Assembly: GCA_009103225.1 (NCBI GenBank)
Contig: RHPI01002949.1
Coordinates: 1-41,936, forward strand
Source of the DNA: Chlorokybus atmophyticus
Taxonomy: Eukaryota > Plantae > Mesostigma and Chlorokybus algae
DNA: 41,936 nucleotides
Reading direction: 5' to 3'
Shown: positions 1 to 32,553 of the stretch, one piece after another
Layout of the letters: each line of letters opens with the position of its first letter
How positions within the stretch are numbered: the first letter of the stretch is position 1
Translations under genes and position numbers: made by a program
Notes under the pieces: generated by a model
What the model saw: the letters and a program-made list of their open reading frames with translations, nothing else
Database searches by the model: none
What the model was told of the DNA's origin: nothing

Positions 1-2477
1 GTTGCAACTTAATCAAGGGGCATGAGAAGCATACGTTGGTGGAGGATGTTGGTCCACTCGATGGTCAGTACCCTAGAGAACTGTTTTGTCAACATGCCTT
101 CAGATCGCAAGCAGTGCCTCCAGATCTGGAGACCATTGTTCAAGATATCATTGAGGCTTGTGAGGGCCTGCCGCTTGCACTGGAGGTCGTGGGCTCCTTT
201 CTCCACACGCGCAGAAAGGGTGATGTGCAGGCTTGGAAAGACGCACTGTGGCGACTGCAGCAGGCAACCGCAGTGGCAGGTACAGCTGACAACAAGCTCT
301 GGGACAAGCTCAAGCTCAGCTACGACTACCTACAACCCGAGACGCAGCAAGTGTTTTTGGATATCTGCTGCTTTGCGTTGGGGAAGAGCAAGGACATGCT
401 GCTCCCAGCGTGGGGCGGGTCAGATGCGCTGAATTGCCTGGTGGAATGGTCCCTCGTTCGCTTAAGTGGAGCCCTGGATGATTGGTCCGAAGATCACCGA
501 GTCTTTGCGTTTGGTTTTATGACTCTGCGTCATGGCAAAAGTTCAATCCTTTCGGTGCATGACCAACTTCGGGACATGGGGCGAATGATTGCCAATTGTG
601 CCAACCCGCCTAGGCACATTTGGTCGCCAATGGCATTGAGCGCCAAATCCATGAAGGTGCTTGCAATGCCCACGTTCCGTCATGGTTCCTTCACCTCATG
701 TCCCGTTCTACTGGCCTGTCAAGGATTGCTGCTTGCATGCATCCAATGAGAACTTGCAATCCACGGTGTTCTAGGAGTGTGTTACAACACACTGGTGGAG
801 TGAACACGTGTGTATTGCTGTTCATTGCATTGTTGTTGCATGCAGGGCTTTGACAACGCCGAGACTATGTCCTGGACTGGTGTCAACAGGAGCCCACCAT
901 TGCGAGGCATGGCCTTCATGCCCCGCCTCCACATGCTGGACCTTGGCACGATTGATTGGGATGGCGAAGTTTACACTCACACTCTTGCGTGCCAACAACA
1001 AAGAGAAACAAGGAAGAAAGAAGGCTGCTGCGTGCGACTCTTGCGTGCAACTACTGCGTGCGACTCTTTCGTGCAACCAATCAGAAAAGCATTTTTCGTG
1101 ACCAAGTGGGTTTTAAAAGACCTGGTATATCTGGAGTGGAAAAGTGCGAGCTGTTCAGCCTTGAACAATTTCTTATGTAATGCCGCTGCACACACAACAT
1201 TGGTCGTCCTCATCGTACATGTGACCATCACCAGATTCAATGTCAAAAGGCTGCGGACTGAGTTCTTAGGAAACCTCAAGGAGCTGCAAGTCCTGGAGCT
1301 GCGGGTTTACCCCACTGGCAATTACAGACAGAACCGTCTAGTTCTAAAGGAGGTGCCTGTGCTTGGCGAGCTTACTAGGCTACAGGCTCTGCATCTCACT
1401 GCATGGCGTTTGAGCATGCTCCCCGAGTCTGTCAGCAAACTCGCCGAGTTGCAAGCGCTAGACCTGAGTATGTGCGAAAGCTTGGCGGCGTTGCCAGACT
1501 CCTTTGGTGAACTCTCTGAGTTGCAAGTTCTGGACCTGAGTTGGTGCAAAAGCTTGGCGGCGCTGCCGGAATCCTTCGGTGAACTCGCTGAGCTGCAAGT
1601 GCTGGACCTGAGTGGGTGCAAAAGCTTGGCGGCGTTGCCGGAGTCCTTTGGCAAGCTCGCTGCTCTGCAATGGTTGGACCTGAAGTTTTGCGACAGCTTG
1701 GCGTCACTGCCGGAGTCTTTTGGCAAGCTCGCTGCTCTGCAGGAGCTGGACCTGGAATTTTGCGACAGCTTGGCGTCGCTGCCGGAGTCCTTCGGCAACC
1801 TCGCTGCGCTGCAAGGGTTGGACCTGCGGGTGTGCGTAAGCTTGGCGTCGCTGCCGGAGTCCTTCGGCAACCTTGCTGCTCTGCAAAAATTGGACCTAAG
1901 CGGGTGCGTCAACTTGGCGTTGCTGCCGGAGTCTTTTGGCAACCTCGCTGCTCTGCAATGGTTGAACCTAAACTTCTGCCACAGCTTGGGGTTGCTTCCG
2001 GAGTCCTTCAGCAACCTCGCTGCTCTGCAAAGATTGGACCTACGCGCGTGCGTCAACTTGGCGTTGCTGCCGGAGTCTTTTGGCAACCTCGCTGCTCTGC
2101 AATGGTTAAACCTGAACTCCTGCCACAGCTTGGGGTTGCTGCCGGAGTCCTTCAGCAACCTCGCTGCTCTGCAATGGTTGGACCTGAACTCGTGCGTAGG
2201 CATGCCGTCGCTGCCGGAGTCCTTTGGAAACCTCGCTGCTCTGCAACAGTTGGACCTAACCGGGTGCATCAGCTTAGCATCGCTGCCGGAGTCCTTCGGC
2301 AACCTCGCTGCTCTGCAACAGTTGGACCTAACCGGGTGCGAAGACTTGACATTGCTGCCGGAATCTGTCAGTAGGTTGGCTCCTGCTGTTGTGGCTGTGC
2401 TGCAGCAGCACCAGCGGGAGGCGGCGGAAGAGGAGGAGGACGGAAGCAAGTCTGCTTCAAAGTCAGCTATTTATTGA
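1..2477 (+). CDS. NB-ARC-LRR (NLR) immune receptor with TIR-NLR-like NB-ARC motifs; 5'-partial. Exons <3..656 and 846..2477
   Basis: The frame is open from base 3. Motifs: RNBS-C (ELFCQHAF), GLPL (CEGLPLALEVVGS), KLSYDYL, RNBS-D (VFLDICCF), MHD (VHDQLRDMGR). A phase-0 GT-AG intron at 657-845 (AAG|GTGC...TGCAG|GGC) joins to the LRR exon, which ends at TGA 2475-2477. The N-terminal domain lies outside the window. Confidence 0.9.
1410..2378 (+). repeat. 13 complete plus 1 partial 72-bp (24-aa) LRR tandem repeats within the NLR
   Basis: The unit LxxLPESFGNLAALQxLDLxxCxS repeats, with the DNA core CTGCCGGAGTCCTTCGGCAACCTCGCTGCTCTGCAA nearly invariant. Confidence 0.95.
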
Positions 2478-2639
2478 TATATCAGTGCAATCGCAGCACT
2501 GCAGGAGCAGGACGGCAGCAAGTACAGCGATTGGGCGGCCTTGCCAGAATCCGTATGTGCTCGCTGGTATGTGCGCAAAGTATGTAGGCGGGTGAGGCAA
2601 TCGGCGCTGCAGGGTATGGTTGCCCCTCACCTTACCAGG
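2478..2639 (+). pseudogene. Degenerate LRR-like continuation in frame after the NLR stop codon
   Basis: The same frame after TGA reads YISAIAALQEQDGSKYSDWAALPESV, resembling the LAALQELDL...LAALPES unit. It ends at a canonical phase-0 donor AGG|GTAAGA at 2640. Confidence 0.45.
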
Positions 2640-2984
2640 GTAAGAGCGGCCGCACACACATGCTCATTTTGCACAGTTGCTCACATTTGTGTACACACAT
2701 ATGCTTACAGCAACACACGTCTTACAGACTGACTGGAAACTTGTGCGTTATGGCACAGGAACCAGCATGCACATGCGTACGCAGACCAATGCAAGCACGC
2801 GCATGTGCACATACCTTCTCCAACAAGGCTGACACGCGCTCACGCACGCAGCCACTTTGGTAGGTCGACCTACACGTACGAGTATGCATGCTGACTTGAA
2901 TACCTGCATGCACATCAAGATTCACAAACAACACTCAACGCAAGCACACCCACTCTAAGACACCGACCTACACATGTTGCTGAC

Positions 2985-5410
2985 ACTGCAGGCGATGGTT
3001 ATGGTGTTGAGCACCTGCTGCTGGTGTACTGGCTGTGATGGCTATTTGTCATGGGACCCACCCAATCGCTGAATACACCACCGGTGGCAAGGGTTGGTGC
3101 TCTGACTACAATGGCAGTCGCATCTCTTGGTCACCAATGGGTGGTCGAGGACTGTGTAGCCTTCCCACGCTGCAAGGAGCAGAGCAATCTGCGCAGAGGC
3201 GAACACATTTTGCAGCATCGCCAATGCTCGTCATGTTTGCTACGCTTTTGAGATTTGCATAGCAGTTGCTATTGATCAGGATCACGACTACGGCAAGGCC
3301 ACAGTCCTGCATCGATGGGCGCTGGCGAGTTCCAAAGCAAAGCTGGGGCTCATTGGCCCCGACACTGGCGCAAAGGCAGAGCATGTACGACGAGGTGAAC
3401 GCCCTTTCAGACAGACAGGAGTGATAGGCGCTGCCAGCCGCTTACCATGCCTGGCTGTTATTATTTACAATGTAAACGGTCATAGGCTCTAAGAGCTGTG
3501 CTGTTGCACGGCACCTGTAAGTACGGCAAATATGTGCCTGTTGCCATTCTGTCTGCTCATATCAAAGCAGACTAGGCAAAGAGGGTATGGAGAGTTATGT
3601 CAGGTTGACGGCACTTGCAATGATGCATTGTATGCTGATCGTGCTCGAAAACGTTGTGTCCAAAGGTTGCGCATGGAGTGACTAACATGCCCGGGCTGGT
3701 TATAGTATGAAACTACAACGAGTTGGTCGATTAATTCCGCTCGTTCACCCTTAGTGCCACTACCCAACAATGCTTGTTACCCGATGGGATCTGCTTTGTT
3801 GGGTAAGGCTATGTGACAAGCCATGCATCATTGGCTGACTATATAGTCGCTGCTAGGCGAGGCTATGCGCACTAGCCTGTCCTCTTGGTGCAGGCAGTGT
3901 GCCCAGCGAAGAAATGAAATAAATAACAAGCGTTTCGCGGAGCGGACGAGACAGCGCCGAGAAGCGCTGTTGCAGTCGATGGTGGATGCTGCAAATTATG
4001 TATTATTGCGTCGTATATCACTGCGGCTCTCTCCGCGCTGCCCTGTCAAGAAAATGATGGTTGGGTGGCTTCCTAAGCATGCTGCATCCATGCGAGCAAG
4101 CAAATTGGGTACATTGCTGAGACAGGCTACACTCGCAATTACAACACTGAGCATGATACAATTTTCAGGGATGCTGTCAGCTGCATGCGGATCTGGTGTT
4201 GCAGCGGAAGGCCAACAGCATGACACCCGTGCATTATGCATGTGTTGAAAAAACGCTGCATCCTACAACTTAACGTATACACATCCACTGCATCAATCAA
4301 AATTGAGCGCACCACTCATCCACACATGCAGTCCCCCACATACAATTCCACATGCATATGCTCTTCAGCCACACAGTCACAGACATGTACTCTCTCTCGC
4401 ACTGACACTCGCACACACTTCTATTCGTTGATACTCGCAGACTTGCACGCGATGACATATTCTCAATACACTCACCTCACACGCCCATTTGTGCAATCAC
4501 CCACCCCATGAACATGTCTTCTTAATCACACAAACCTGATCAGACCGCTGGGTGCATGCAAGTGTGGCCATGAGAGCATCAGAAGCGGCGGAGTGAGTGC
4601 CAACCTATGCTGCAGCGGTGGTGGTATGCCCACTGGCCAGGCGGCAAGAATGACGCCTACTTCATCCCACGGCGACGACCACAAGGCTGCCGCCGCCCCC
4701 GCCCACAAGGACAAGCCGATGATTATTGTCACCGGCAGCGCGACAAGATTTGGCGGCGACGGAGGCAGTGGGTTGAGGCGGGGTGACTAGCAACTACTGC
4801 TGTTTCCTTGGTAAATAGCAGAAGTCCACCTGCCGTCTTGCCATCTCTCTCTCGTTCATTCTTCCCCCCTTCTAACCTTTCTCTTCTCGCCCCCTTTTCA
4901 CCTTTGCCTTCTCCCCATGCTTTGTTGCTTTCTCGTGCATGCACGCCGCTGCACCCTGATTCACTGCTGGCTCTTCTGGTACGTCTACGCACACACCCAT
5001 TGTACACCACAGCACTTACACGCACACTCATGCACTTGGCTGCATGCGCGTGGCATGGCAGCCCAAGTGTCAAGCAGACAATCAAATCCGAGTTTCACCA
5101 CCTCAAGATCTTACAGATGCAATTCTGCAATGCAACCCATGCTTGCTCTAGGCGCCCATCGCTTGTCCCAAAGTGGTTGTCAATTGTCACTTGTCAATCA
5201 TCTGGATACATACAATGCACTTGAACGCACAACCTCCAGACATTGTGCCGCTTGTACTGTTTAGAAGTTTCCTATACCCACCGCATCAGTACACACTGTG
5301 CGTGCGCGTACTCGTGTGTGCGTTATGTACACAACTTAACTTGTATGCTTGGGAAACAAGAGCGATTGTACTGACTTGCACTTCACTTGTGAATGTTTAG
5401 AGGGGGCGCC
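2985..5410 (+). repeat. Diverged ~2.4-kb segmental duplication, copy 1 (copy 2 at ~18970-21280)
   Basis: Colinear matching blocks at an offset of ~15.8-16.0 kb. Examples: GGCTGACTA(TA)TAGTCGCTGCT 3834 vs 19738, CATGTGTTG(A/G)AAAAC 4239 vs 20040, CCGCCCACAAGGACAAGC 4699 vs 20589, TGTCAAGCAGACA 5067 vs 20953. Boundaries are approximate. Confidence 0.75.
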
Positions 5411-5451
5411 TTGACAAGTGTGTGTTGTGTGTTGTGCATTTGACCTTTCAG

Positions 5452-6637
5452 GTGATTGTTGCCTGTGATGAGCATTACGAACGGTTTTCACTGAAAGTAC
5501 CAACCGAGGATGACAAGATGGGAGCGGGAACGCACGACGAGTACACCAACATAGCGAACAAGGTTTACGAGGAGCAGAATCGCTCCGGCTGGTTGGTTCC
5601 GGTCATCTTCAAACCGCCCGGAGTGAGAAAGCATTTACCCGACGGGATTAGGAAGTTCAGCTACTTCACCCTTGGCGATCAGCAGGCAAGTTCACAAAAG
5701 AGTGGGTGTAGCATTTGCTCCAAGCTGTACACTTCTGTTTGGGAGACATGCGCTTGCAACATGCGCACAGTCACCTTGCATTGCTTGACAACTGCGCATC
5801 AGCAATCAGAGTGGTTTATTGTTTCCATCTTCGTGCACCAGGAACCCTGGGTTGGATATGACACCCTCGTGAATCACTTGGGCACTCTCCAAGCCTTCGT
5901 GCAGCCCATGCCATCACAACATAGGTTCGCATTGCGGCCTGGTTTGCATGTGTTGGCTTACCACATAACGCACGTAGTCTGAGTTCACTTGACTTTGCAG
6001 CGCTTCCGAGTCACCGCGAGTGGGCGTGCTTAGTGTTCCCGAGCTGCGGAAAAATGAGACAGAGCTTACTGACAAGTGGCGCAATGAGGTGCAAGACGCC
6101 ATGGACACAATACAAGCCTTCATGCAGACCTCGCCAGACTACTACGCCGACTTCAGAGCATATCGCGCTAGCGATGATAGCCAGCAAGAAGGGCCCTTGA
6201 AAAGAGTGGAGCAAGCACGCAGGTCAGACAACCTATGATGCATTGCAATATGAAGCCTTCACCTGATGGCCAAGTACTGATATGACCTCCGCACCAACAC
6301 GACATGACATGACAGGGTTCTGCGGGACTTCTGGCGTTCAGCATACAAATGGTACATGGATGGCATGTTGCCTCCTGACTTTTTCAGCAAGTCCAATGTC
6401 TGGTGTGCAAGAGGCAACACTTTCCGGCTGATGGTTGAGCCGATTGACATTGCCAACTACTATCGGCTCGAGCTGTGGAAGCAGTGGCCTGTTGGCAATC
6501 GACATTACCTTGAGGCAGACAGTCGGCCAGAGTACTACACGTTCTTGGAGCTGCAGTACGAGAAATATAACAAGACTGCTCCGCCGTCGTCAACACAGCG
6601 CGCATTGGACGAAATGGATGCCATCGAAGCAAAGTGA
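5452..6637 (+). CDS. SEFIR (TIR-fold) domain fused to an EDS1-type EP domain; 5'-partial. Exons 5452-5685, 5842-5924, 6001-6222, 6316-6637 (286 aa + stop)
   Basis: The SEFIR C-terminal half reads VIVACDEHYERF...GAGTHDEYTNIANKVY...LVPVIF...HLPDGIR..YFTL...GYDTLVNHL. The EP domain reads DYYADF...RRVLRDFW...MLPPDFF...W...GNTFRLMVEPIDIANYYR...HYLEADSRPEYY, matching the EDS1/PAD4 pattern GYYDSF..FWD..LP.DF..W..Y..LVEPLDIANY.R..Y...RP.RY. Intron phases 0, 2, 2 all match and the exon sum of 861 is divisible by 3. The upstream exon(s) were not identified. Confidence 0.85.
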
Positions 6638-6703
6638 TGAGTTGCAGTGCTTTGCTCTCATCTCGTTACAAAGTGTACTCCAACTTGTCCAGCGTAAATA
6701 ATG

Positions 6704-6929
6704 CGTGTGTGTGTGTGTGTGTGTGTGTGTTTATGTGGTTGCTGGATGTGCTCAGACTCAAGATCCGCATATATTTGCATGTGTGTGATTGCGTTTCTCC
6801 GTGTGCGCGCGCGCGCACACGCATGCCGCATACATGATCACCGGGCTAATGACACCCTACCTCTACGCCTACTGCCCCCCTGTTCATTATTCACCGTGCA
6901 TACAGCATGCTCAAGCACGCGCGCGCGCG

Positions 6930-7000
<71 letters not shown>
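6704..7000. repeat. Microsatellites: (GT)n at ~6704-6731 and a (GC)n(AC)n(AG)n run at ~6921-7000 abutting the gap
   Basis: Seen directly in the sequence. Confidence 0.95.
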
Positions 7001-7317
7001 NNNNNNNNNNNNNNNNNNNNNNNNNNNNNNNNNNNNNNNNNNNNNNNNNNNNNNNNNNNNNNNNNNNNNNNNNNNNNNNNNNNNNNNNNNNNNNNNNNNN
7101 NNNNNNNNNNNNNNNNNNNNNNNNNNNNNNNNNNNNNNNNNNNNNNNNNNNNNNNNNNNNNNNNNNNNNNNNNNNNNNNNNNNNNNNNNNNNNNNNNNNN
7201 NNNNNNNNNNNNNNNNNNNNNNNNNNNNNNNNNNNNNNNNNNNNNNNNNNNNNNNNNNNNNNNNNNNNNNNNNNNNNNNNNNNNNNNNNNNNNNNNNNNN
7301 NNNNNNNNNNNNNNNNN
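7001..7317. other. Assembly gap (317 N)
   Basis: Run of N. Confidence 1.
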
Positions 7318-10300
7318 GGGGTAAAGGCCGACTGCGCTGACACCATCAAGGGCTGTTGTTGTGGTGTGTTAGGGCTACAAGACTCTTGCAGCCACAACCC
7401 ATGCAAGAGAGCGGGTGCGGCACACTATAAGATGGGCTATTACAAACCAATTCACAATGATAACTTATACACATCTTCAAGACTACTGAATTGTCCAACA
7501 ACTAAGGCGCATCGTATCAATCAAATGTGTCAATATACCGGTAAGCCAAATCAATCCTCGGTTGGGTGATGAACTTGCAACTTGGGCAACACATCGTTCA
7601 AACAATCCAATAACCCTTCAGAACCTGGATCACATTCAGAATCGGGGTCGATCTGATGATATGTCCACGATTGTAGCAATTCGGGGAGGCGGGTTTCCCG
7701 GTTACCGCCCTGCACATTCCAAGAGAGAAGCTCACAGGGTTGCAGGCAATGCGATGGCAGCAGTACCACCTATAGCATTCAACGGCGTCTGCGCGATTGC
7801 CTTGGCGCTCGCATAGTTATTACACAAGCGCAACTGTTGTGACCATTCATGTGTAAGGAAACGAACCTTCAAGAACACTGGTACAAGCAGCGTTGCCTGC
7901 GTTGTGCTGGTTGAAAATCCTTGTGGATATCTGCAGCCATTCCACTGATACTCCGTGCCCATCATCATACGTGCTCGTGTTGTCCCGTTTGGCAATCTGC
8001 ACATAATCTGGATCTCCCACCACGAGAACCTGCACTGCATTTAGATGACCACAGAGCCGACATCACATACAATAAGTTTTCATGTTCGAATAAGGGACGT
8101 GTGCGCAAACCTTGGTGCCTTCCGCAAAACCCTGCGCAATAAACTGGGCCCATGCCATGGAATAAGGTTTTATCTGATCGATGACTACCTCAAATCCACA
8201 AGCATGTATCCTCCACGCAAGCTGAGACACCTGCACGTTTATGCAACCAGGAGGTGAGCTGATTGCATATATCAAGAGGACAATGCAGTTTTGTTCTCAC
8301 GGTTGGCGACCAGATCACAGAGGTGTGGCCTGCATTCAGTCAACCGTCAACAGTGACACCTTTTGCACGTGCGTCACGGCGCGTTGGCAATAAGACAAGA
8401 AGACCCGTTTATTCTCCAACCCGCCAGGAAGCTTGTAAATTCCGATTGAGATGTGTCCGAGTCGGGATCTATTTAGTAGCATCTGAATTCCCGTAGCCTC
8501 TCGGGAATATGCATTCGTGGGATAGCACCCTGCGCACCAAATACAATTAATGATACAATTGCGGGGCACTGAACGCCTTGAGTCTGAAAACAACTGTTTG
8601 CCCAATGGCAGTGACAGCAAGGGGTGTATGTGCGAGCGAACCAAGAACCAAGAAGACGATTAGTACGAGCCACCTGCCTTGATTGTGCATTTGGTTCAGC
8701 AGACATGTCAGCAGCTGCCACTGCCGCGCAACGGCATTCGCAACTGCATGTCCTTCCGCAGTTTGCTTGACGACATCAACACATTCAAATTTCCCACCGC
8801 CACTACCTGCAGTTCCACTAGCTGAGTCACGACAGTATCAACAAGCTTGCAATCGCAGGGGCCCCCCCTGGGGGGCCTTTGCAAGCAGTGTTTGTGCTGA
8901 GCAACTGCGTGATGCCTAGCGTGCACCACGCATTGGTGCGTTGAGTATTGGTTGGTCACGAGCATGACAGTTACAGGTGCAAAGATCTTGTAGCCTGCAG
9001 TCCCATATTTACTGGTTCAAGTCTCCAATGTGTCCTTATGCGGTTCCCAGTCCAAAAGCACTTGAAGATTGTACTTATCGCGCAGTGTTGCAAGCCAGTT
9101 GACTTGAATGGATTACGATGACAGACCGGTCAATCAGTCGCAAGCCAGCTACTCCTGTCTGGGTGCGGGAGAGATGGTAAGGTCCTCCTCGAGACGGCAT
9201 AATTGGCAATTGCAATGGCAATACCTGTTGAGCGTGTTCTGGACACGCTTAACAATGCGATAGGTATACAGTGCGTCCCAACACGGTGCTGTTGCTGTTG
9301 CTGTTGCTGCTGGCAGCATTGTTGCTATGTGCGGTTGTACCTGTTGTGTCTGTGCTAGTTTCTGCAAAGCAACACGTGGGCTATTGAGTGAACATGAGGT
9401 GCTCCAGGTAATCGGGGCGCAGGCATGGCATGGGCTCACAGGTGTGCATGATGCTGGCACACGCACTTAACCAATACAGTGCCAATTAGGTAGTGTGCGC
9501 ACTGACGTTGTGGTGCACAGTACCTTGGTAAACAAGGCAATGTGCACAACAAAAAAGGCAGTGCAGCATTGAGTTCTAGAAGACATGCCAAAAAGTTTGT
9601 GCACAGCATATGCAACAGCATGCCATACTGTTTGGTAAGCTGTGCTTACATGCTTGTATGTAGCCAATGCACTTGGTGTAGATTGTGTGCAGTCCGACTG
9701 AGCTCACTGCGGTTCAATGAAGACAAAGGACTGCTTTTATGCGTAGCAGATCTAACTAATGCATGTCTTGAAGGAATACACAAAGAACGACAGCATCTGT
9801 ATATAGCACGTGTATGCAGCAATATGCACACATTGGTATGCTGTGAGTCTGCAGGTGTGTACATGTGCAAACACCTGCAGCCTGATTGTTCGATTGGGCT
9901 CCTGACGCTGCTTTGGATATGGCCGCCAGTTCTGGCCCGCTGTGACTGTCATTCCCTGCCGTGGAGCTGATTATACATCGCAAGTCCACCATGGTGACGG
10001 TCCCAACAGCGGCCGCAACAGCGACGACCACAGGGTGTAGCATCATGACGGATGCGGCAAACGCCGCATCAAAGGCAACGCATTGACTGACCATGAACGC
10101 ATTGCGCACCGTATCCTGCTTATTGTGCCTTGACTTGTAGTGCCTGTGCGCGCACAAATGCATCAGAGCACTCAACGCGTGACAGCCATTCGTCACCACT
10201 TTGAGGGTGATCCCACATCAGCAAGCAACTTACACAACAGGTGCATCATCGAAAGCAGCTGCCGCCTCTTCTTTCATAATGAGGCTGGCAACAGCTCCAA

Positions 10301-11381
10301 CAGCAGCTGCCGCAACAATCGCTGGTGTACAGAAGACAGCAAACGAGGGTATGGCAATGGCCCGCAGCACATTGAACAAAGGGCAGTCTTGCTGGGATAT
10401 ACTCTGCAAAAGCAACACCATGAGCGAACGGTCCATTGGCAGAGTCACAACCGGTTGTTGCCGGATGCGCAACAGACACAGCCAGGCATAGTTGTACAGC
10501 TAGCTAGCTCTCCTTGTTTCACAAGTGAATCTGCCACAGAATGAGAACCTCAACCGAGCTCACCTGTTCCGTTGGCTCAATGTCGGATAGGTTTACTCCA
10601 GGGACGGTTGCTTTAGAAGCAAGCTAGCGCTTGGTGAAGGTGCGGTGCGGCCTGCTGGAGGACCGGACGGCAGCTCCCCGCAGCGACTCTCCAAAAAAGG
10701 AAGAGCCAGAACCACGCAAGACTGGCACAATTTTGTGCTTGTCGAAGAATTCGGCCCGCCATTGACGCTCGCCGCAAGAAAACGCCGACACCTCGAGCCT
10801 TACCAACGACACAGCCGGCAGTGCCGTCGCCCCCACCGTCACCATCGCCATAAACAACAGCCAAGCTCAACAGCGACAGCACGCCCACGCCATATCTTAG
10901 GCAGAGGCGGAAAGCCAGCCAGCAACAGCCGCAAGGCGGTCGACCTGGCTAGCCACCCGTGGTTAGCTGCCAGACCTTGACAGCCTGATCGCGCAATTAC
11001 CCTCACCCTAACCCTTATGCTTCCTTTGTATGTGCCACCTCCTCCCCAAGCTTTCGCACGTCACAGCAACAGACCACGCCAACAATGCCGCCACCCTGCT
11101 GCCTCACGCCTGCACCAACGCCAAGGCAACAACCTACCCCTCTGAATGTCCACGTGGATGCCACTCCGCAAACACGTCGGAGTAGCTTCAGGCTGATGAT
11201 GATGACAGTGGCGGAAAGTTGCCGGAAGAACCGCTTGATTGAGCGGGGCTTTGTGCCTCCACAGCACACGCGCCGCTAGAAAGTCCTGCTGACGGTCCCT
11301 CATACAGTATTGATTTGTTGTAATCTACAGGTTGATATCTAATCAATCAGATAAATGAGTAGATCAATCAGTGCTAATCAG

Positions 11382-11870
11382 TAGGGCTGGCCGAACCTAG
11401 GTTCGGGCATGACCGCACGAACAAAGAACAAGAACCTGAACAATATTGTTATCATTAAGTTTAAGGTTCATATAACCTTGCTTTGTTTTTGCAGAACACA
11501 GCACATACACACACAACACAAAGCAAGCGACATTAATGAGTGACATCGAACGAATCAACAATATTGAACAAAAATTCGAATAAAATCTTTGATTGATTGT
11601 ACATAAAATTCATCAAAAGGCGTATATTGATTAGCACAATCACATGCATCATTTGACACGAAGCATTGCATCATCAGTGGCATATATTATGGTAAACAAC
11701 ACATATATGAAACCGTGTATTAGCTAATAGTGTGACGTCTAGTCACGCTGCGTCACGTGTTGCATACAGTCACGCCGCAATGCAGCGTGACTGTGCGTAA
11801 TATTGCGTGACTGCAAAAGGCTCATTCCCTATATGCGTCATGCATAGAGAACGAACAAAGAACGTTCTGG
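11382..11870. mobile_element. Possible end of a hAT-like DNA transposon or MITE
   Basis: An AT-rich block begins TAGGGCTGG and carries a repeated CGAACAAAGAAC motif (~11416, ~11852). No matching opposite TIR was found. Confidence 0.25.
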
Positions 11871-11899
11871 CGATTATGACATTTCTACTCACTTACTTG

Positions 11900-13426
11900 C
11901 TAGTAGCCACCGCACACTTATGCACAAAACAAAGGACTTACAACTCCAGCTAGGAGGAAGTCTAGCAACACAACTTGTGTGCTAAGTACCACTTGGTACA
12001 ACGGCAAGACACCACGGGAGCAGCCCAGCAGCTCCGCACCAAGGAGGAAGAGGATGACCACACGCCCCTCCACTCAGCTCCAATCCCAGACACACACATG
12101 CACCTAAGGTGGCGCACACATACACAACATCACACCCCACAAGGGATGTGAGGGAGAGCCCCTCTAACAGCTCCAAAGCAGGCACCCCCCACACAAGTTA
12201 GTTCTCGTAGGGCACCTCACATGATGATGCAAATCGTCAGCTTACACAAGCTTATATACTTCACTTGTTGCTCTCCGACCTGATACACAATGTCTAAGGC
12301 CAACAAGGCCTTGTCATTGTGCGCTAACCTATACACATGACAATTCCCTACATAGGGATCGTTAAACTCCACCTCGGGAGTATCAATGAGATTATCGCGG
12401 AAACATCAATATATACAGGGTACTGTTCTTGAGCTAACAAGTCCAACATTGGACTTGTCCCATCACAGGATTGGGGTACCTAGGCTTATTCGGAATGTCC
12501 CACACAGGACACTGTGTGACACGATATGCCATTAGCAGCTTACTACTGTGTGTAGCGGACACGCAATGGCAGACATCGTCAAACAAACGTGAACCACGAT
12601 TAACAGCTCACAACTGTCTCAGGGTCACCATGATTGGCAATCATTGTTACACGGTGGTGTGACATCATGATACAAGGCTCACATGGCCAGGGTAGACAGT
12701 AATCAGCTATGTGCTACCACATATTAATGCCTTGTGTACTACTATGTCCGAGCGATCTAAGGAGGCAAGGACGTGTCCGTGTGGTTCAACCTGCTAAGCA
12801 CTACACAGCTTGATAAGCGATAAGTCCATATGAACCACATAGTCCACATGTGTCACAACATTGACCTCTCAACTTACCTGCTGAGAGGGTCACAAACTTC
12901 TGCACAAGCAGCTGTACTTTACCACACACCTTGCTACCAGCAACAACCCACAAGGGAGTAGATGGGAGAGCACCCTTCAAAAGCTTCAGCCAGGCACCCT
13001 ACGAACGAGTAGTCTTGCAAGGCCAGTAACTCCCCCTTACCATCACAAGATGGTAGCCATGCCTTAATACTACCCGCTGCTCTCCGACCAGACACATAGA
13101 ATATCCGAGGCCAACACAACCTCGCCACCTATGCGCTGACCTGTCAGCACAGGCTGACTCTGTCCACCCTCGGACACATCAACACAAGCAACACCCTTGG
13201 TGCCTTAGCGACTCTGTTTGACACTGACCAGTCCTGTATTTACTGGTAGACAATGCCTTATGTAGTAGCTAGGTCCTCATACACCAAGTGCATAGAACTG
13301 ACTTCATGAGCACGTATGCCAGGTGCTACATTCACCATGACTATACGAGATCCTCATTTAGTCCTTCTTACTTACCACATAAGTAAGAAATTGAGAGTGA
13401 CTTAAGCCAGTCCTTTGGGCGTGACA
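11900..13426 (-). mobile_element. 3' LTR-like region of the adjacent chromovirus, with degenerate internal repeats; left boundary uncertain
   Basis: The minus strand reads a polypurine tract GGGGAGGAA followed by TGTCACG starting at 13426. The block CCCCACAAGGGA..GGGAGAGC...AGGCACCC recurs at ~12135 and ~12947. Confidence 0.45.
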
Positions 13427-13572
13427 TTCCTCCCCACTTGCCTTGCAACTTCCACGTTGCAAACTGATGGAGCACAAGCCCCGCACGACAATTGCCAGCA
13501 AGGGTGGCCAACCCTTCTGAATCATCGCACACTACGCGTAGAACATGTGCAAGCCACGGGAGTGACAACCAA

Positions 13573-18768: not shown

Positions 18769-18801
<33 letters not shown>

Positions 18802-18969: not shown

Positions 18970-21280
18970 CTTGCAAGACGACATGTATATACTGGAGCAC
19001 CCGGTTGCAAAACGCCCTTCTATGTGGTGTGAAGAAACTTGGTACGCGACCGTCTGTTCGCAGTTGTTTGATTGCGCACATAATCTAACACCAGCTGACT
19101 TTTGTGCAGATCGTATTATCATACAAGAGCGACAAATGCAACAAGGCCTATGTGGAGTTTTGTGCTGCTGTAGACCAGGCGCATGGTGATGTCTTCAAAG
19201 AGATAGACCTTGAGATTTAGATGCATGTTGAAGGGAGCTTCTGGTACCAATACCAACTTGACGAAGCTGTAGTAATACCTGTTACGCCCTTCTGAGCCAG
19301 TTTGCATAAGGCAGTTCTGCGAGTTTCCGAGCCCGAACGCTTAAGAGTTGTTCGCAGTACTAGACCGTGCACGTCCAGCCACTGATCCATGATTAGATCT
19401 CTTAATGACACACAATTTCTATCCCGCATGCCTCGACAAGGTTGAGCGCAGACTGCTACACCCATAGGAGCGCAATTATACAGCCTAACAAGTGCTGTGA
19501 CAAACGTTACACAGCCCCAATGTGGCTTTCACATTCTGCCAGTTGCTCTCTGGCTGTGCGTTCACACAGTCCAAACAACGCTCTTCACGGCGTGTACACT
19601 AGGTGTATATCGCGGGCCGCATGGTGACGACCAAAATAATTGGTGTGCATGCAACCGCATCACCCCTGTCACAGGCTACCAACATTTTGCACAGCTACTC
19701 TCAGTTCGTTGAGGCTATCCAAAAGCGAAGCAACACTGGCTGACTACAGTCGCTGCTGCGGCTATGCACATAAGCCAGTCCTGTTGCTGTAGGCTTGGTG
19801 TAGGCTTGTTGGTGTAGGCAGAGTGGCCAGCGCAAGAACTATTCACAAGGCACGAAACACACGCTGGGAATGCTGGTCGAGTCTGTCACTTGAACATTTA
19901 CTGTACTTGGCATGCTGCATCCTTGGGAGCATGACGCAAGCACACAATGCAAACACAGCATTGAGCATGGTAGACGTAACGGTGCTGTCAACTGCATGCG
20001 CAAATGGTTGGCCTGGGGAAGAGCAACATCAAATACTAGCATGTGTTGGAAAACGCACCCTTCACATACTACATACATAGCATAGACAAAACCACTAACT
20101 TAAGACTCAAGCGCTACACGCTACCACTGAACATTCACACATGCAGTTATGCACACACAGCTCTACGCGCAAGTTCTCCAACCACACTCTCACAGACGTG
20201 TATACGCTCTCTCACTGGCACGCTCATGCACTCTCACTTTTACTGGCTCATATTCACAAATTTGCAGGCATTCTCTTCAACACACGCCCAGCAAGCAGAA
20301 TCCGCCAACAATGTTTTGCGACAAGACATGCATGTCCGCTCAAACGTACTCTTTTAACAGACAATGATGACTATAATAAGGAGAACTTTGAGGAGTGCAG
20401 ACCAGCTGTTTGCGTGCAAGTGGGGTTGAGAGAATGAGACGCAGGAGAGGGAAGGCGGAAGCAGCGGAGTGGGAGCCAAACTGAGCTGCATCAATGCTGG
20501 TAAGGTGGAGGTGGAGGAAGCCACCGGCCCGGCGGCGAGAATAACGCATGTTTACTCCACGGCGATGACAAAAAAGCTGCCGCCGCTCCCGCCCACAAGG
20601 ACAAGCTGATGATGAGCCTAGTGGCTTAGTTATCATCAGCGAGACAGGGTTTGTTGGCGGCGGCGACGGCGGCGCATGAGAAGGAGGCAGTGGGTTTACG
20701 CTAGGTGTGTGGCAATTACTGCTGATTTTCATGGTATGTAGCAGACTCAACCTGCCGTCTTTCCATCTCTCTCTCCCGCCCCCAATCCTGTCTATTGCTT
20801 TCTCGTGCATGCGCATTGCTGAACCTTCATGTGTGCTGCTGTCTCTCTTAGTACACACATACACACGGTACACCACCACAGCCCTTTTGCAAGCATACGC
20901 ATGCGCGCTCTTAAACACACGCACCTGCCTGCATGCGCACTGGCAGTTGTAATGTCAAGCAGACAGCAAATCTAAGTCGCCGACTCTCAAGAAAACAAAT
21001 TCAATCCCATGCTTTCTCTGGGCCCCATTGCTTGTGGTAAGTCTAACCGTCACTGATTACTAATCTGGACTGGGTACCTTCGCACTTGTACGCACTACCG
21101 CCAAACATTGTGCTGATTGTACTGTGTGGGAGTCTCTTCTACCCGCATTAGTACACATTGTGCACGTGCGAGTACAGTGCGTGTTGCCTACATGACATAT
21201 TATGTGTACTTGGGTAGCAGCATTCATTCACAGCATTCACCAACAACTGCACATCACGTGTGCACGACAAAGGGGGTTGA
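18970..21280 (+). repeat. Diverged segmental duplication, copy 2 (copy 1 at ~2985-5410)
   Basis: Same colinear blocks as copy 1. Both copies show a donor-like site at the equivalent position (TTCCTTG|GTAAAT 4811 vs TTTCATG|GTATGT 20734). Confidence 0.75.
19110..19295 (+). pseudogene. Possible decayed TIR/SEFIR N-terminal exon
   Basis: After a TTTTGTGCAG acceptor it reads IVLSYKSD...YVEF...DVFKEID..*..GSFWYQYQLDEAVVIPV, loosely like VFISYS.D...V...DV.LD...W...QL.EA..VI.V. It has one in-frame TAG. The match is weak. Confidence 0.25.
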
Positions 21281-24099: not shown

Positions 24100-24815
24100 A
24101 TGGCTGAACCAGTGCCTCCCTGGCCCAGCATCCTCGCCTATCTGGTCGGCTTGCTCGGGTTCTTGTTTGGACTGTATGCTTCTGTGCGCAACAGGGAAGA
24201 TGCTCGAAACAGGCAGGCAGCAGAGCTGTCTATGAAGTACAATGGTCTTGATGACGCGATGGATGTTAGCAAGCAGTACCAGGACGAACAGGACTACTAT
24301 GTTGGCTTAAAAAGAACCGGCCACCACAGATTGAGAGAGCTCGGGGTAAAGTGAAAAACTTTTGGGATCGGGTTACAACGCAGTACGAGCGCGGTTCCAG
24401 CCCAGAGGACATTCTTTCTTCAACAAGCGACTGGCTCGCAAGAGGCAACAACTATCGGTTGCTGGTGGAGCTCATCGACATTGCCAGCTGGTATTCTCCA
24501 AAGGGTGCAAATTTTTATGCCTCCACCGGCAAGCATTACCTTCGTCTCTCGGTTGCTGAGGCTGTTGTGCGGCCGCGGCGTTATTACCTGCTGGAGCAGG
24601 CATACCGCAATGCGTACCCTGAGAACACTAAGAGCTCAGTCGACTACGCACTGAAGGAGCTCGTCATTGCTGGGGTGAGAGGGGCCCGGAAACCTGATGA
24701 TGACCTCAGGCAGGAGGCTCATCGGCTCTCCGATGAGAAAGCGGGAACATCAACGTCACTTTGCAAGCTGTCAAGGAGGATGAGGCTCATTTGGGTAGTA
24801 ATCCTATCTCTCTGA
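24100..24815 (+). CDS. Intronless single-transmembrane + EP-domain gene with one frameshift at ~24345-24354 (pseudogene or assembly error)
   Basis: The N-terminus has a hydrophobic helix (PSILAYLVGLLGFLFGLYASV), then DDAMD...QDYY. After the shift it reads VKNFWDRV...SPEDIL...DWLARGNNYRLLVELIDIASWY...KHYL...RPRRYYLLEQAY, colinear with the EP domain at 6001-6637. CAG|ATG at 24100 could also be a splice acceptor. Confidence 0.75.
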
Positions 24816-26929
24816 CTGTTGAATCCACCTCGCACTTGCCAATCTGCGAGGCAGTGAGGACACATAGTAGCCTTTGTGCGAACAGTTTCAACACGTAGAT
24901 ACTTATATGAGATGCACATCGACTGCTCGTGTGCATGCATATAATGCAACCCAATATGCGTGTACAGCATGATGGTCATTGGCATCCAAATAACATGCCA
25001 TTTAACGGTGTATGGATAAGGGTGGGGCAAACGTCAGAGCTGAGGTAGTTAATAGATTGGTGTGAAATGTGTTCCAGCTTAGTGATTGCGACAATGATAG
25101 CTGAAGATGATCTGCCATGTCATGCCTTGGCAACAAGTATATGCAAAGCATATTGCAGCAAGCAGTCATTTGGTGAGCAGGTGCACAGCAGGTGCACCTG
25201 CTGACCAAGTGCTGCCCGTTGTTTTGCACATAAGTCCAAGGATGCCTGACAAAACTTTCTCGTACTTAATGCACCACGTGTTGGTAGTGAGCGTGTCCGT
25301 GACCATGTGGGTGTAAGAGTGCGTGTCCTAGAGTCTTGTGCTGATGGCTGTGCGTGTGCTTGCTGTGCTGGTGTGATGTTGCTTTGCTTGCAAAAACCAC
25401 TGGAAAGCCTATAGTTGAGCATGACGCGCTACACAACCGGTGTACATATGTCTAGAGTGGTAGGCAAGTCTGCACGTGTAGAAGCATTTGTTTACAAAAC
25501 ATGACAACTAGAACCAACTACCTCAACTTCTCATAAACCATGTTAAGTACGTTGTGTAGTCGTGCGTCCCCGCCCCCAGTGCATCAGCTGCGGTCGGCTC
25601 CTGAATGAAAATCGCTCATAATGCTCATCACACAACCACGATCACCTAAACCATAATGAGAACAGCTGCGATTTGCAAATCACAGCATGCATTGCTATCA
25701 TGCAGACGTGCCTGCTTACTACATAAAATGCCAGAAGTTGGGGTTTGTTGATGACAGCGACTATGCGCAAGGTGTTCACCACCAGTAATAATGTGACAAG
25801 TGCTACCTTTGTGCCGGCAGCATTCAGCATTTGTAATGAAAGCCGGCCATGACTTGTACTGGTTCTTGAAGTCCACAATGACGTCTATGTTGTCTTGTTG
25901 CAGTTGCTCGGCAAGTCCCCGCGCTCTTTGTGTTGGTTGTCGAACTGGCAGCAGCTGATGATTGCTGTCAATGTTGCCGCTGGCGTCGCGGACAGTGCCC
26001 TTGTTGCCTCTCGTCCCTGCCCGCTACTTGCCACAGCACATGCGAAATGTAACAAGCATGGAACAGCGTTTGTTGCAACAGGAATGCTCTGCAAGCTTTA
26101 CAAGAAAATCGTAGTCGTAGTTGAACTTACACAGAAGCAGCATTGTAGGAGCGGCCAGTTGAAATATGTGTGGTTCCAGTAGCCGGCGCCAGTGACAATG
26201 GATGCTGCCGCAATTAGCACTGCAGGCAGCCTTTGAAATACTTGTCTACGCATCTCAAGCAAGCGCTTCTGCTTCTGCTGCTAAGCCAAGCGCGGTGCAG
26301 GCCAGCCTTACAATGGGTGCAATGCGCCCAACTCTTGTCAAGGTTTCAGTTCAGCGATAGCCATGTCAGCACCAACCGAGTGTATAGCTGCGGAATAACA
26401 CAGCACACTGTCGACTGGTGGTAAGACGCTGTGTACCATGACAACTGACATGGCAAGCTTCCAAAGTAGTACTAGTAGTTATAGCATGTCAAGTTGTAAA
26501 CTTCTACTCTCAAAAGTGCACATAAGCTCGCAGAACTGAGCAGTGCATGTGCATTTGTGGCGGCAGCGGTCAAGTTCATGTCCATGTCGTCGTCATTGTC
26601 GTCATTGTCGTACTGCTAGTGACGGAGTTAACACGACGGCGGCACTGCAGGTACTGCGTCACATTAGCGTCAGCGTCAACCTGCGTGTGCTGCTGTGTCG
26701 TCAGTCGGTCAACGCCTCTGCCGCCGCTGCTTGCGCCTAGCTTGCATTAGGCCCCTACCTGATTAGCCCTCTTGCGTACATAGGTTGATAATGATGTTTC
26801 TTTGCTGGCTTGGCTGGAGTGTTTGCATCCGCATGTTGCGCATGCGTGGCACAGCCTATTGATGCTCCGCATTGGAAGCAAAGGAAGGAATATTGCTGCA
26901 CAAGAAGTTACCTTTGCTATTGGGTCCTG

Positions 26930-27031: not shown

Positions 27032-27230
27032 ATGTCAACATAGCGTAAGGATTACACAAGTGGTTCGCCATGCAGCGTGGTGATGGCGATTGCATTGGCA
27101 CACACCGCGCAGAACGTCTGAACCACTTTTGCACTTTTTGGTTGTTGTTGTTGTTGCTGTTGTGTCGGTGCTGTTGTCGCTGTCGCTGTCGCTGTCGTTG
27201 TCGTTGTCGTTGTCGTTTGTTGTTGCTGTT

Positions 27231-27842
27231 TGTTACGACAAGGGTCCGGCCATCTTAGCCATAAAAGACCATGGTGGGAATTATGGCTATATCAATTCTT
27301 ATGTATTACGCCCTAGCCCTCTGGCTACCGTAACACACCTCCCCATTAGAACCTTAGCACGCCCTCGTGCTAATTCTTATAGGGTTCTCACAGCCCTCTG
27401 CCCGACGGGGACCGAGCTGTTACGACCAACGCTTCTCTGGCCGGCGCCTTGCGCGCCGCAACGCGACTTGCCCAGCCCGCGTTGTCGTGCTTCGTTCGCA
27501 ATCCAGCAAACGTTCTTCGTGCGCAATCCAGCGAACGTTCTTGCGACCGGCGCACCGCGTCGCATTTCTCACCGTCCCCCCGTGTTCCTTCCAACCGCGA
27601 CTTTCCCAAGGTCGCGGGTCCAACCGCGGCTTGCCAGGCCGCGGGTCCCAGAATCTTTGCCAACCGAAAAAGTCACAGCTCTATCCCCCTTGGGAGTCGA
27701 GCCTGCGACCTTTAGGTTGTCAGCTCACGATACCAATTGTTACGACAAGGGTCCGGCCATCTTAGCCATAAAAGACCATGGTGGGAATTATGGCTATATC
27801 AATTCTTATGTATTACGCCCTAGCCCTCTGGCTACCGTAACA
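27231..27842 (-). mobile_element. Complete TRIM (non-autonomous miniature LTR retrotransposon), 612 bp
   Basis: Two 105-bp LTRs (27231-27335 and 27738-27842) appear identical by eye, with termini TGTTACG...CGTAACA. The 5-bp TSD is CTGTT on both sides. The minus-strand PBS TGGTATCGTGAGC is iMet-like and the PPT is GGGGAGGTG. There is no internal coding capacity. It is inserted in a GTT/GTC microsatellite. Confidence 0.93.
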
Positions 27843-28489
27843 CTGTTGTTGTCAGTGCTGTTGTTGTCAATTGTAGTGATTGACGCACACTGCCACGCAC
27901 GCAAGCAGAAAAGTGTCCACCGCATGTCCATTGGAAAGGTTACAACCGTTTTTACTATCTGAAGCAACAACCGAGTGTTTCATAGAAGCTTGCTTGTGCC
28001 TCACAATCTTCATCGTGTAGATTGCAGCAGTGATTCGACATGCATTGCAACTGAATATTTCGTCTATGGAAGCGGGTCTTGAAAGTGATCATGTATAGCA
28101 AACATTGCGCGTCGCACTCTCCATCCCCAATACCAGTTCTACACGCCATCAAACCACCTCTCAAGACATCATCCCACTCAATAGGGAAGATGCTAACAAC
28201 TAAATTACCTGAACTGGATATAACGCACTTCCGTTGTCATCAATCTACTTCATAGCGAAACACTTGTAGCGAAACACAGGGGCAAAACCCCAACTGTGCA
28301 TACAAACAAGTCAAACCTCCACAACCATCTCACCCACCCCCACAACAATGTGGGTGTGCGCTTTACACTAAGGCTACATACAGATGCACTCTCTGCATCA
28401 TACCAAAATGTGGTAAATTGAAGCTAAATGCCCACCTGAACGAGTGCATCACACACTCGTGACTGTGCGTGTGTAAGTGTGTGTCGTGC

Positions 28490-29199
28490 TCAAGGTGTGG
28501 CAATGTTCTCCTTAGCGCGCGGGCCCACCTCGTCCTTGTCTAGCCCCACCTGCTCTGCGTGCTTCTGCGGCGGGTGCAGCATGTCCAGCAGAGTCTGCTC
28601 CCAATCCTTGGCAGGACCCTGGACAACACCACAAACACACAACTCAGTACAGCTCTGCATATTAGGAAACCAACACGCGTGCACACGCGCACACAGGTAC
28701 ACACATGCGCATATGTGTCTGTAAGCGTGCATGCTCACACACACTCACACGCGCATGAAGGGGAGGGGGGGGGGGGGGGGGGGNCACACGCACGCGATTG
28801 TGCACACACGCATGATCGCGTGCGCATATGCAGCTTGCAAGCATGTGTGTGCACACATGTACACACACGCCTGCGCACGCAAACCGCGCGTTAGTACACA
28901 TACCTTCCATGACAGGTCCTGATTCATGCACGCGTATCTCATCCTTTCAAACTGCGTCGTGCCGAACACGGACAGCAGCGCGCGTTTTGTGGCTTTGACG
29001 ACAGCATCAACATCAGCAGGATGCACGGTCTCGCAATCCACGTCGAAGCAACCCATCTGGAAACCGGTCACGCCCTCGCGCACCGTGTCGGCGAGGCCGC
29101 CAGTTGTCACCACCATGGGGATGGTGCCGTAACGCATGGCGTGGAGCTGGATGAGACCGCACGGCTCGAAACGCGATGGCACGAGCATGTAATCGGCAC
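28490..29199 (-). CDS. GBSS: Granule-bound starch synthase, last two exons only (29199-28904 and 28618-28490)
   Basis: It reads [26 protein letters not shown]...[18 protein letters not shown]...QDLSWK|[11 protein letters not shown]...AKENIATP*. The intron between the two exons has GT-AG ends, and the upstream exon has an AG acceptor at 29200. Upstream exons were not found; there is a single-N join at 29817. Confidence 0.9.
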
Positions 29200-29328
29200 C
29201 TGCGAGGGAGGGGTCAGTGATAAGCACACATGAGCGTGTGTGCATGTGTGCGTGTTGTGCGACCACATGCGTGCGTCCGCCAGCGTCCGCGCATCTGTAT
29301 ATGTGCGCATACATGCATGTTTGTGCGG

Positions 29329-32010: not shown

Positions 32011-32553
32011 GATGAGTCAATGACGTCAAACACCTTGCTTTGCCCTGGCTGTGACAATTTGCTGAGCCATAGAGGGGACGTTGAGAAGAGCTTCGTTTAT
32101 TATCTGAATGACTTACTCAACCGAGCAGAATTGACCTGCTTCGTGGATGAGCTCAACTTGCAGCCCGGGGAAGAAGGCTGGTTTGTGATTACCGCCAATG
32201 TACGGTCCGCTCGCATCAAAATGCCTGTTTTGTCGCGTGGCTACGGGGACTCCTAGTACTGCCTGGAAGAGCTGCGCATCATGATGGAGAATTCAACAAA
32301 CATCGTCATGCCTATCTTCTTTGACAACAAATTTAACAAGCTGAAGGCCACAATTTAGAAAAGTATTAGCAGGTGAGTAGATTCTCCCTGGACCGTCATT
32401 TATCTTCCAAGTAGCCATGTTCCTGGTTACAAACATGTTTTGTGTCTTTAGGGCATGCCTGAGTGGTAAGCAGGAATATGTTGAAAAGGAATCTGCATAC
32501 CGTGGTGCGCTTGATAAAGCATTTAAAAACACAAGCCTGAAGCTCGAGAATAA
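32011..32553 (+). pseudogene. Plant-type TIR domain gene with two in-frame TAG stops (exons ~32011-32372 and 32452-32553)
   Basis: It reads LLSHRGDVEKSFVYYL...CFVDELNLQPGE...VLSRGYGDS*YCLEELRIM...VMPIFFD...TI*KSISR|ACL...SAYRGALDKA. The stops are at 32254 and 32356. There is a phase-2 intron GTGAGT(32373)...TTTAG(32451) and a further donor GTAAGT at 32554. The 5' boundary is approximate. Confidence 0.8.

Follow-up and report, generated by a model that had tools for sequence, protein, structure and literature searches.

A partly decayed NLR, SEFIR-EP and TM-EP gene cluster in Chlorokybus, and a candidate immune-type module to which it may belong

The window analysed here is the whole of a 41,936-nucleotide stretch of Chlorokybus atmophyticus DNA (contig RHPI01002949.1), in which a preliminary description had placed, all on the plus strand, an NB-ARC-LRR gene of the nucleotide-binding leucine-rich-repeat receptor (NLR) type, a SEFIR-EP gene about 3 kb downstream of it, a gene joining a transmembrane (TM) helix to an EP domain (TM-EP), and a remnant of a TIR domain. 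Each of these elements lies where it had been placed and on that strand. TIR receptors range from algae to flowering plants, and the only known plant readers of their signals, dimers of the EDS1 family, are described from seed plants alone; in papers up to 2026 the family and robust EP homology are both treated as confined to that group (10.64898/2026.05.20.726525), and TIR-NLR signalling in seed-free lineages is stated to be unclear (10.64898/2026.05.20.726525; PMC11218826). The EP domains of EDS1 dimers bind both TIR-made nucleotides and the leucine-rich repeats (LRRs) of helper NLRs (PMC12856790; 10.64898/2025.12.10.692544).

Here, we delimit the genes of this cluster, compare their EP domains with those of the seed-plant EDS1 family, and arrive at a reading, to which we give a probability of about 0.6, under which an immune-type module recurs in Chlorokybus and the locus is one of its copies, now partly decayed.

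Genes of the cluster

The window is eukaryotic DNA of about 50% G+C in which retroelement remains are abundant. Its TM-EP frame is 89% identical to P0001 (jgi/Chlat1 Chrsp114S01653 of Chlorokybus atmophyticus) and its SEFIR-EP exons are 96–98% identical to P0002 (Chrsp258S03871), so that, judged by protein identity, the source is Chlorokybus or a strain near the published Chlat1 genome. The preliminary description had expected a non-seed streptophyte alga as host, which agrees with the 89–97% identity of the window proteins to Chlat1. RNA-type contigs from public runs deviate from the window at exactly the letters at which P0002 differs (for example 6566 T>C, Tyr to His, and 6629 G>T, Ala to Ser), indicating that the strain behind the runs is of Chlat1 type and that the window belongs to a close relative of it.

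The NLR gene begins upstream of the window, and its first visible exon (3–656, plus strand) encodes the C-terminal part of the NB-ARC domain with the RNBS-D and MHD region, ending at a GT donor at 657. Past a GT..AG intron (657–845), the exon at 846–968 (GFDNAETMSW...MAFMPRLHMLDLGTIDWDGE) continues in frame, is collinear with the N-terminus of the Chlat1 paralogue P0004 and is covered by RNA-type contigs at depth; the exon at 1107–2477 encodes LRRs of about 24 residues, seen in the DNA as 72-nucleotide periodic repeats, and ends in a stop codon at 2475–2477. All three exons are open and were set by splice sites, frame and collinearity with P0004, while one RNA-type contig links the first exon to the next and another crosses the stop codon. 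NB-ARC thus precedes LRR in one continuous frame, with Pfam scores of 39.7 bits for NB-ARC (cut-off 23.5; residues from 3–746, profile positions 163–247) and 151.9 bits for LRR_14 (from 804–2474), alongside matches to LRR_13 (RPS4B-like) and other NLR-type LRR models.

Of the solved structures, that of Roq1, a TIR-type NLR (TNL), is nearest to the NB-ARC piece, at 2.5e-12, followed by RPW8-type NLRs at 3e-11 to 3e-6 and coiled-coil NLRs (CNLs) at 3e-4. Local BLAST gave the same order, with moss TNLs at 87–90 bits versus 25–43 bits for CNLs. These nearest relatives, Roq1 and the moss TNLs, lend indirect support to the earlier assignment of this gene to the TIR-NLR type, which had been made from its NB-ARC motifs.

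The mRNA runs on past the NLR stop codon as a transcribed tail (2478–3537) with introns at 2639–2757 and 2859–2990, whose GT..AG joints appear in contigs of runs X1 and X2; no long open reading frame (ORF) was found in it. These introns fit a reading frame that formerly ran on beyond the present stop. A contig of run X4, which looks DNA-like, is unspliced across 2443–2788. Two spliced introns 3' of a stop codon are a layout that usually marks a transcript subject to nonsense-mediated decay. The string GCAAGT also occurs at 2448–2453, 27 nucleotides before the NLR stop, and no splice from it was seen.

The SEFIR-EP gene begins 3 kb downstream of the NLR and comprises four plus-strand exons, in frame and collinear with P0002, P0003 and P0004. 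The first (5451–5685, VIVACDEHYERF...) is 86% identical to residues 123–200 of P0003, a 415-residue Chlat1 SEFIR-EP protein in which Pfam recognizes SEFIR (residues 68–200, 41 bits, cut-off 23), TIR_2 (37.7 bits) and EDS1_EP; since the matched residues fall within that SEFIR envelope, only the C-terminal half of SEFIR is present in the window. A short exon follows at 5842–5924, where loose contig ends in X1 and X2 fit CAGCAG|GAACCC and the sequence is collinear with P0003 and P0004. The third exon (6001–6222, DAMDTIQAF...DYYADFRAY) carries the first EP helices, is 97% identical to P0002 and has GT..AG joints in X1, X2 and X3. The last (6316–6637, stop codon 6635–6637) encodes the EP core (FW...WCARGN..RLMVEPIDIANYYR...RPEYY) and matches EDS1_EP (PF18117) at 38.6 bits over 6308–6634 (cut-off 23.1; profile positions 37–115 of 211), with EDS1 (6e-5) and PAD4 (1e-4) as its sequence matches in the PDB.

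This exon structure derives from contig joints and loose ends in up to three runs from two studies. The intron at 5686–5841 is of the GC-AG class, with the donor GCAAGT supported by contigs of two runs, and the joint into the last exon was reported as 6219>6313, with the cut at +3. Each exon was searched separately, and P0002 and P0003, both public proteins, stood in for the joined product; on their own, 5452–5685 and 5842–5922 gave no Pfam match at E up to 10 and did not reach the SEFIR cut-off.

The TM-EP gene (24100–24815, plus strand) opens with an ATG at 24100, after which come a hydrophobic segment some 22 residues long (WPSILAYLVGLLGFLFGLYASV; helix at approximately 24118–24186), the first EP helices and the EP core. 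The helical segment after the TM (DAMDVSKQY..DYYVG) is homologous to the third SEFIR-EP exon (DAMD...DYY), and the ORF at 24270–24812 matches EDS1_EP at 40.3 bits, with SAG101 as its best PDB match (1.7e-4). The TM and helix part and the EP part lie in different frames, one base apart: an A5 run at 24309–24313 is one base short, and where P0001 runs in frame through ...YYVGFKKNRPPQIERARGK... the window has TTAAAAAGAAC. The 164 codons 3' of the frameshift are still open, and the lesion is either a recent mutation or a homopolymer error.

Two broken genes complete the set. On the minus strand at 25541–26232, tblastn with P0003 and P0004 revealed a fragment, absent from the preliminary description, that matches P0003 residues 8–158; it retains the TM helix and most of SEFIR, is interrupted by a stop and changes of frame, and lacks the EP part. 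The TIR remnant (32062–32355, plus strand; LSHRGDVEKSFV...) carries the plant-type motifs LSHRGxDxxxxF... and SRGYGDS, then a stop, then YCLEEL. Its frame is broken by in-frame stops at 32254–32256 and 32356–32358, and the domain has lost its C-terminal third. The first 64 residues (32062–32253) score 21.6 bits against PF01582 (cut-off 21.3) and 25.6 against TIR_2 (cut-off 28), and their PDB matches are weak and limited to plant TIRs of the flax L6 type.

The two halves of the cluster, NLR with SEFIR-EP and TM-EP with the SEFIR fragment and TIR remnant, are separated by an assembly gap of N letters (7001–7317) that sits in a microsatellite of (CA)n(GA)n type, on the downstream side of the SEFIR-EP gene. 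It begins 364 nucleotides beyond the stop codon of that gene, with the last of the RNA-type contigs ending at 6693. Since no coding feature spans the gap, it raises no question of frame; near its right edge no ORF with a family match was found.

The EP domain and its genomic company

Both EP exons exceed the Pfam EDS1_EP gathering score, and a profile built from them and P0001 retrieved 193 proteins at E up to 1e-3 among 1.84 billion representatives, with full-length EDS1/PAD4-type proteins of 600–690 residues appearing from about 4e-14. The core motifs (FW, LP.DF, W..G..YR.LVEP.DIANYYR, GHYL and RP.RY) align column by column with the seed-plant family. We examined the fold on the paralogue P0003, which stood in for the window exons and shares 90% identity with the window over its EP exon. 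Its AlphaFold model has a pLDDT of about 95 over the EP domain (residues 240–415), and the top 23 Foldseek hits in the PDB are all EDS1, PAD4 or SAG101 chains, down to E = 0.03; 15 domain-level alignments span about 150–175 columns at a root-mean-square deviation of 2.6–3.3 Å. Profile matches and the modelled fold thus indicate that the algal EP is a real EDS1-family EP domain, as the preliminary description had proposed for the window. Pfam found no lipase-like domain in the window exons or in P0001–P0005, whose N-termini are instead a TM helix, SEFIR, TIR or LRR. The prediction of a complex between the EP domains of P0003 and P0001 scored 0.00, with controls not run, and is evidence neither way.

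Could the resemblance be no more than a shared motif between unrelated helical proteins, too short and partial for homology to the EDS1 family? About half of the Pfam profile is matched and there is no lipase-like domain, and a preprint that notes "short EP-like sequences" in green algae restricts robust EP homology to seed plants (10.64898/2026.05.20.726525). Against this, the two exons score well above the cut-off, the algal profile reaches EDS1/PAD4-type proteins, Foldseek finds nothing else near the EDS1-family chains, and the homologue in Myrmecia bisecta bears the automatic UniRef name "EDS1 EP domain-containing protein". We consider a chance likeness of this kind highly improbable. That preprint and the UniRef name also mean that EP-like sequences in green algae are not new. 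EP fusions to SEFIR, TIR or NLR, the LRR-SEFIR-EP architecture and the clustering of EP genes were not found in the literature searched.

The Chlat1 genome holds intact relatives of these genes. P0004 (Chrsp114S01646, 680 residues) joins LRR, SEFIR and EP in one protein. Its start (MAFMPRLRMLDLGTTDWDG) matches the NLR exon at 846–968, and the end of its LRR (PAVVAVLQQHQQEA; LHPAVVAVLQQHQQEA) matches LAPAVVAVLQQHQREA, 17 codons before the window stop codon; after that motif the P0004 frame continues into SEFIR-EP, whereas in the window the frame ends there, ahead of 3 kb of sequence that is transcribed but non-coding. On the same Chlat1 scaffold as P0004, and about six gene models from it, lies the TM-EP homologue P0001. 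The NLR and SEFIR-EP genes of the window therefore look, on sequence, like two halves of a formerly single fused gene rather than separate steps of a pathway, and the P0004 fusion, with a TM-EP gene on the same scaffold, leads us to regard the window as a split, decaying copy of that module. Further Chlat1 fusions are P0160 (SEFIR-EP) and P0005 (TM-EP-TIR-SEFIR half-EP). P0160 was the sole new relative from a word search with P0004, the other matches being LRR proteins, and a word search with the TIR region of P0005 found P0005 alone.

Among nine informative loci from outside Chlorokybus, the lipase-less EP gene has a TIR, NB-ARC or NLR-type LRR gene no more than 10 kb away in six. In one (L001, NCBI GCA_030012885.1) a TIR gene is 4 kb from the EP gene; in a second (L002, an ENA assembly) TIR plus NB-ARC lie 1.3 kb off in divergent orientation. 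A TIR-NB-ARC gene and a 307-residue gene of TM-EP type stand divergently about 0.7 kb apart at 6091–10924 of ENA ERZ19610909 ptg000923l (L004), which suggests a common promoter region. The JGI metagenome contig Ga0590115_0004548 (3300060285; L005, G+C 0.56) contains, within 17 kb (569–17099), genes for a TIR-NB-ARC-LRR protein of 1019 residues, an EP protein of 170 residues and a TIR-only protein of 210 residues, besides a second TNL, and would make a cleaner test case than the window. The remaining two have TIR plus NLR-type LRR (L011) and NLR-type LRR (L030). The EP proteins of these loci fall into different 50%-identity clusters and are less than 50% identical to one another, although L011, L030 and L054 may stem from one organism. 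Given the usual rarity of TIR and NB-ARC genes, six of nine would, by rough judgement, be far above expectation.

A scan of metagenomes with a degenerate DNA motif returned 66 loci, mostly seed-plant EDS1/PAD4 genes from host DNA, with eight of non-seed-plant type. The same scan of 185,579 prokaryote genomes gave 8 matches, all without EP context and by estimate about the number expected by chance, and a search of the ESM Atlas by features gave no usable match. One protein in the representative library, P0034 (2011 residues), is of seed-plant type and has two lipase-EP units followed by TIR-NB-ARC-LRR; if the gene model is real, it is a fusion of the EDS1 family with a TNL.

A proposed recurring module and its decay

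The fusions in Chlat1, the paralogous arrangement on scaffold 114 and the contigs of other organisms together argue for a real link between EP and TIR or NLR genes, as far as gene architecture and neighbourhood go. In the module that we envisage, an NLR would have its LRR end joined to, or followed by, SEFIR and a short lipase-less EP, accompanied by a gene for a membrane-anchored EP. The short EP would probably be a partner in NLR signalling of the TIR/SEFIR type. It might bind the nucleotide product of a TIR or SEFIR enzyme, as the EP pocket of EDS1-PAD4 does, or it might dock on the LRR of the NLR, as the EP domains of EDS1 heterodimers do on ADR1 and NRG1. Intact copies would then pass on producer, reader and membrane-anchored EP as one block. 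A functional link from TIR to EP is what we infer from this arrangement.

The preliminary description had gone further and proposed a clustered pathway of sensor, signal and receptor. The association itself stands, since EP is tied to TIR, SEFIR and NLR by the Chlat1 fusions and by the six loci elsewhere, but the set is not intact: the TIR is dead, TM-EP is frameshifted, SEFIR lacks its N-terminal half and the further SEFIR gene is broken. The locus does show that the arrangement of NLR-SEFIR-EP plus TM-EP exists in more than one copy, and how copies decay.

Several observations weigh against the interpretation as a module. With most of its members broken, the locus is not in itself a working pathway, and the N-terminal domain of its NLR lies upstream of base 1, outside the window. 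An RNA-type contig has 163 additional 5' letters (...VGQMFKDGTK) that encode the end of the N-terminal half of SEFIR; these were found nowhere in the window, and a search for the N-terminal SEFIR exon on the plus strand of 2475–5460 gave, at best, an unconvincing 7-residue match (E = 0.22). Either the exon was lost in the window strain, or the contig represents the sister strain's copy or a near-identical paralogue. With that exon absent from the window, what the RNA shows to be expressed is the copy in the sister strain or a close paralogue rather than the window copy.

The EP domains raise points on the same side. Their match covers the N-terminal half of the Pfam profile only (positions 31–115 or 27–122 of 211); the C-terminal half (about 125–211) is not matched, and the proteins end some 30–60 residues later. 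As a criterion for small-molecule binding we took the basic residues AtEDS1 R493, which is required for it (10.64898/2025.12.10.692544), and AtPAD4 R314. When the R493 position is placed from HMMER ranges and from the pattern of gaps in a related chain, it appears as Tyr in SEFIR-EP (RPEYY) and as Arg only in TM-EP (RPRRY). Among the nine informative loci elsewhere, a TIR or NLR neighbour is missing in three (Myrmecia bisecta, L003; L032; and L054). Lastly, the co-location of both halves of the cluster within 33 kb depends on the scaffold join at 7001–7317.

That join is where the co-location could be in part a product of assembly, with a left block (1–7000) and a right block brought together at a microsatellite gap and the TM-EP frameshift being a homopolymer error. 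The gap does lie in a (GA)n run, the Chlat1 counterparts P0002 (Chrsp258) and P0001 (Chrsp114) are on different scaffolds, and the frameshift falls in an A5 run with an open frame downstream. Yet each block taken alone has an EP gene next to NLR, SEFIR or TIR material, and Chlat1 scaffold 114 has both LRR-SEFIR-EP and TM-EP genes; the odd gap length of 317 N, marked as estimated, may reflect spanning links. We regard an assembly product as unlikely. Somewhat less unlikely, though still improbable in our judgement, is that the cluster is a by-product of a rapidly duplicating region rich in transposable elements, in which NLR, TIR, SEFIR and EP families pile up and decay by segmental duplication with no functional coupling. 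The preliminary description had itself cautioned that the region is rich in such elements and fast-evolving, and rightly so: retrotransposon remains lie at 13.8–14.5 kb and 32.7–41.2 kb and occupy the intervals between genes, pseudogenes make up at least three of the six immune-type units, a starch-synthase exon fragment is embedded in the same stretch, and Chlat1 EP genes stand side by side on scaffolds 103 and 231, as tandem duplication would leave them. What such turnover leaves unaccounted for is the covalent fusion of EP with SEFIR, TIR and LRR in several paralogues and the presence of EP beside TIR, NB-ARC or NLR-type LRR in other organisms whose EP proteins are so divergent; duplication alone fails to explain the same pairing in unrelated genomes. 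We therefore favour a partly decayed copy of a recurring module.

The EP domains of the window can be set beside EDS1, PAD4 and SAG101. They share the EP core motifs, the helical fold over about 150–175 columns and the genetic association with TIR-type NLRs, and the TM-EP type appears to keep the Arg that aligns to AtEDS1 R493. They differ in lacking the lipase-like domain, and with it the LLIF-helix dimer interface, in being attached to a TM helix, SEFIR, TIR or NLR LRR, in the apparent Tyr of SEFIR-EP at the R493 position and the half-length profile match, and in residing in a streptophyte alga rather than a seed plant. The NLR is closest to TNLs (Roq1, RPP1 and those of mosses) in the C-terminal part of NB-ARC and in LRR type, but the paralogue P0004 carries SEFIR-EP behind its LRR, a tail that the window frame stops short of.

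Membership of the SEFIR family (PF08357; the IL-17 receptor/Act1 type and bacterial proteins) is indicated by the profile scores of P0003, and a bacterial SEFIR cluster was the only named fold neighbour, a weak one (TM-score 0.49) from a search dominated by the poorly modelled N-terminal half; the window copy differs in having the C-terminal half alone and in its fusion to EP. Extra domains behind the LRR, head-to-head or tandem clustering, turnover of pseudogenes and richness in transposable elements are also features of flowering-plant NLRs with integrated domains and of their clusters. Here, by contrast, the appended EP is a homologue of a downstream signalling hub and, as far as can be told, not a decoy for a pathogen target. 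In bacterial Thoeris systems the gene for a TIR producer stands next to that for a nucleotide-sensing effector. The physical linkage of a TIR-type enzyme gene to a candidate signal reader would resemble that layout, although no homology of EP to the sensor domains of bacteria was seen.

More tentatively, and at odds that we place a little below even, the EP domain may have begun in green algae as a small lipase-less partner of TIR/SEFIR-NLRs, fused or adjacent to them and often membrane-anchored. EDS1, PAD4 and SAG101 would later have added the lipase-like domain, and algal EPs would read TIR signals in lineages "without EDS1". Algal EP modules offer a route to the origin of EDS1, and the recurrent fusions and neighbours supply candidate proteins for the binding of TIR-made nucleotides or NLR LRRs. 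For experiments, the intact paralogues P0003, P0004, P0005 and P0001 are a better choice than the window locus.

Retroelements and other features of the window

The cluster is bounded by the remains of a Ty3-type long terminal repeat (LTR) retrotransposon (32676–41193), identified by Pfam and self-BLAST. Pfam places within it an integrase-PHD segment (33806–35379, minus strand), a gag segment (35828–38146, plus strand) and an RNaseH-integrase-chromo segment (39163–41193, minus strand), and a further integrase fragment at 13770–14528 on the minus strand. In self-BLAST, repeats at 32676–33286 recur at 33276–33600 and 35315–35598 (94.8% identical inverted, 96.5% direct). These LTR-like repeats flank the integrase-PHD fragment and begin about 320 nucleotides past the TIR remnant, and insertion of a retroelement may have truncated the TIR gene. 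Ten of the largest ORFs at 9.5–20.9 kb and 32.3–32.7 kb gave no Pfam match.

An isolated exon of granule-bound starch synthase (GBSS) type lies at 28913–29230 on the minus strand and is not part of the immune cluster; it matches residues 399–495 of rice GBSS1 (7e-30) and the Pfam family Glycos_transf_1. Inspection by eye revealed no other starch-synthase exons on that strand, which may mean that the exon is a gene fragment and not the working GBSS gene of the host. It sits amid low-complexity CA/TG-rich sequence, with a single N at 28784 and another at 29817.

Three repeated or deeply covered segments deserve mention. A segment just upstream of the SEFIR-EP gene (4617–4853) recurs with 81% identity at 20510–20775, in the spacer before the TM-EP gene. 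The 247 nucleotides at 3798–4044 have very deep coverage by RNA-type contigs in three runs (up to about 2460 in X1), whose flanking parts have no match in the window; the segment may belong, as an exon or other element, to a family that is multi-copy or highly expressed, and Pfam gives no match for the overlapping ORF at 3865–4248. Finally, a perfect 107-bp direct repeat (27230–27336 and 27737–27843, 507 bp apart), each copy encoding ...YDKGPAILAIKDHGGNYGYINSYVLRPSPLATVT..., probably marks the ends of a small mobile element.

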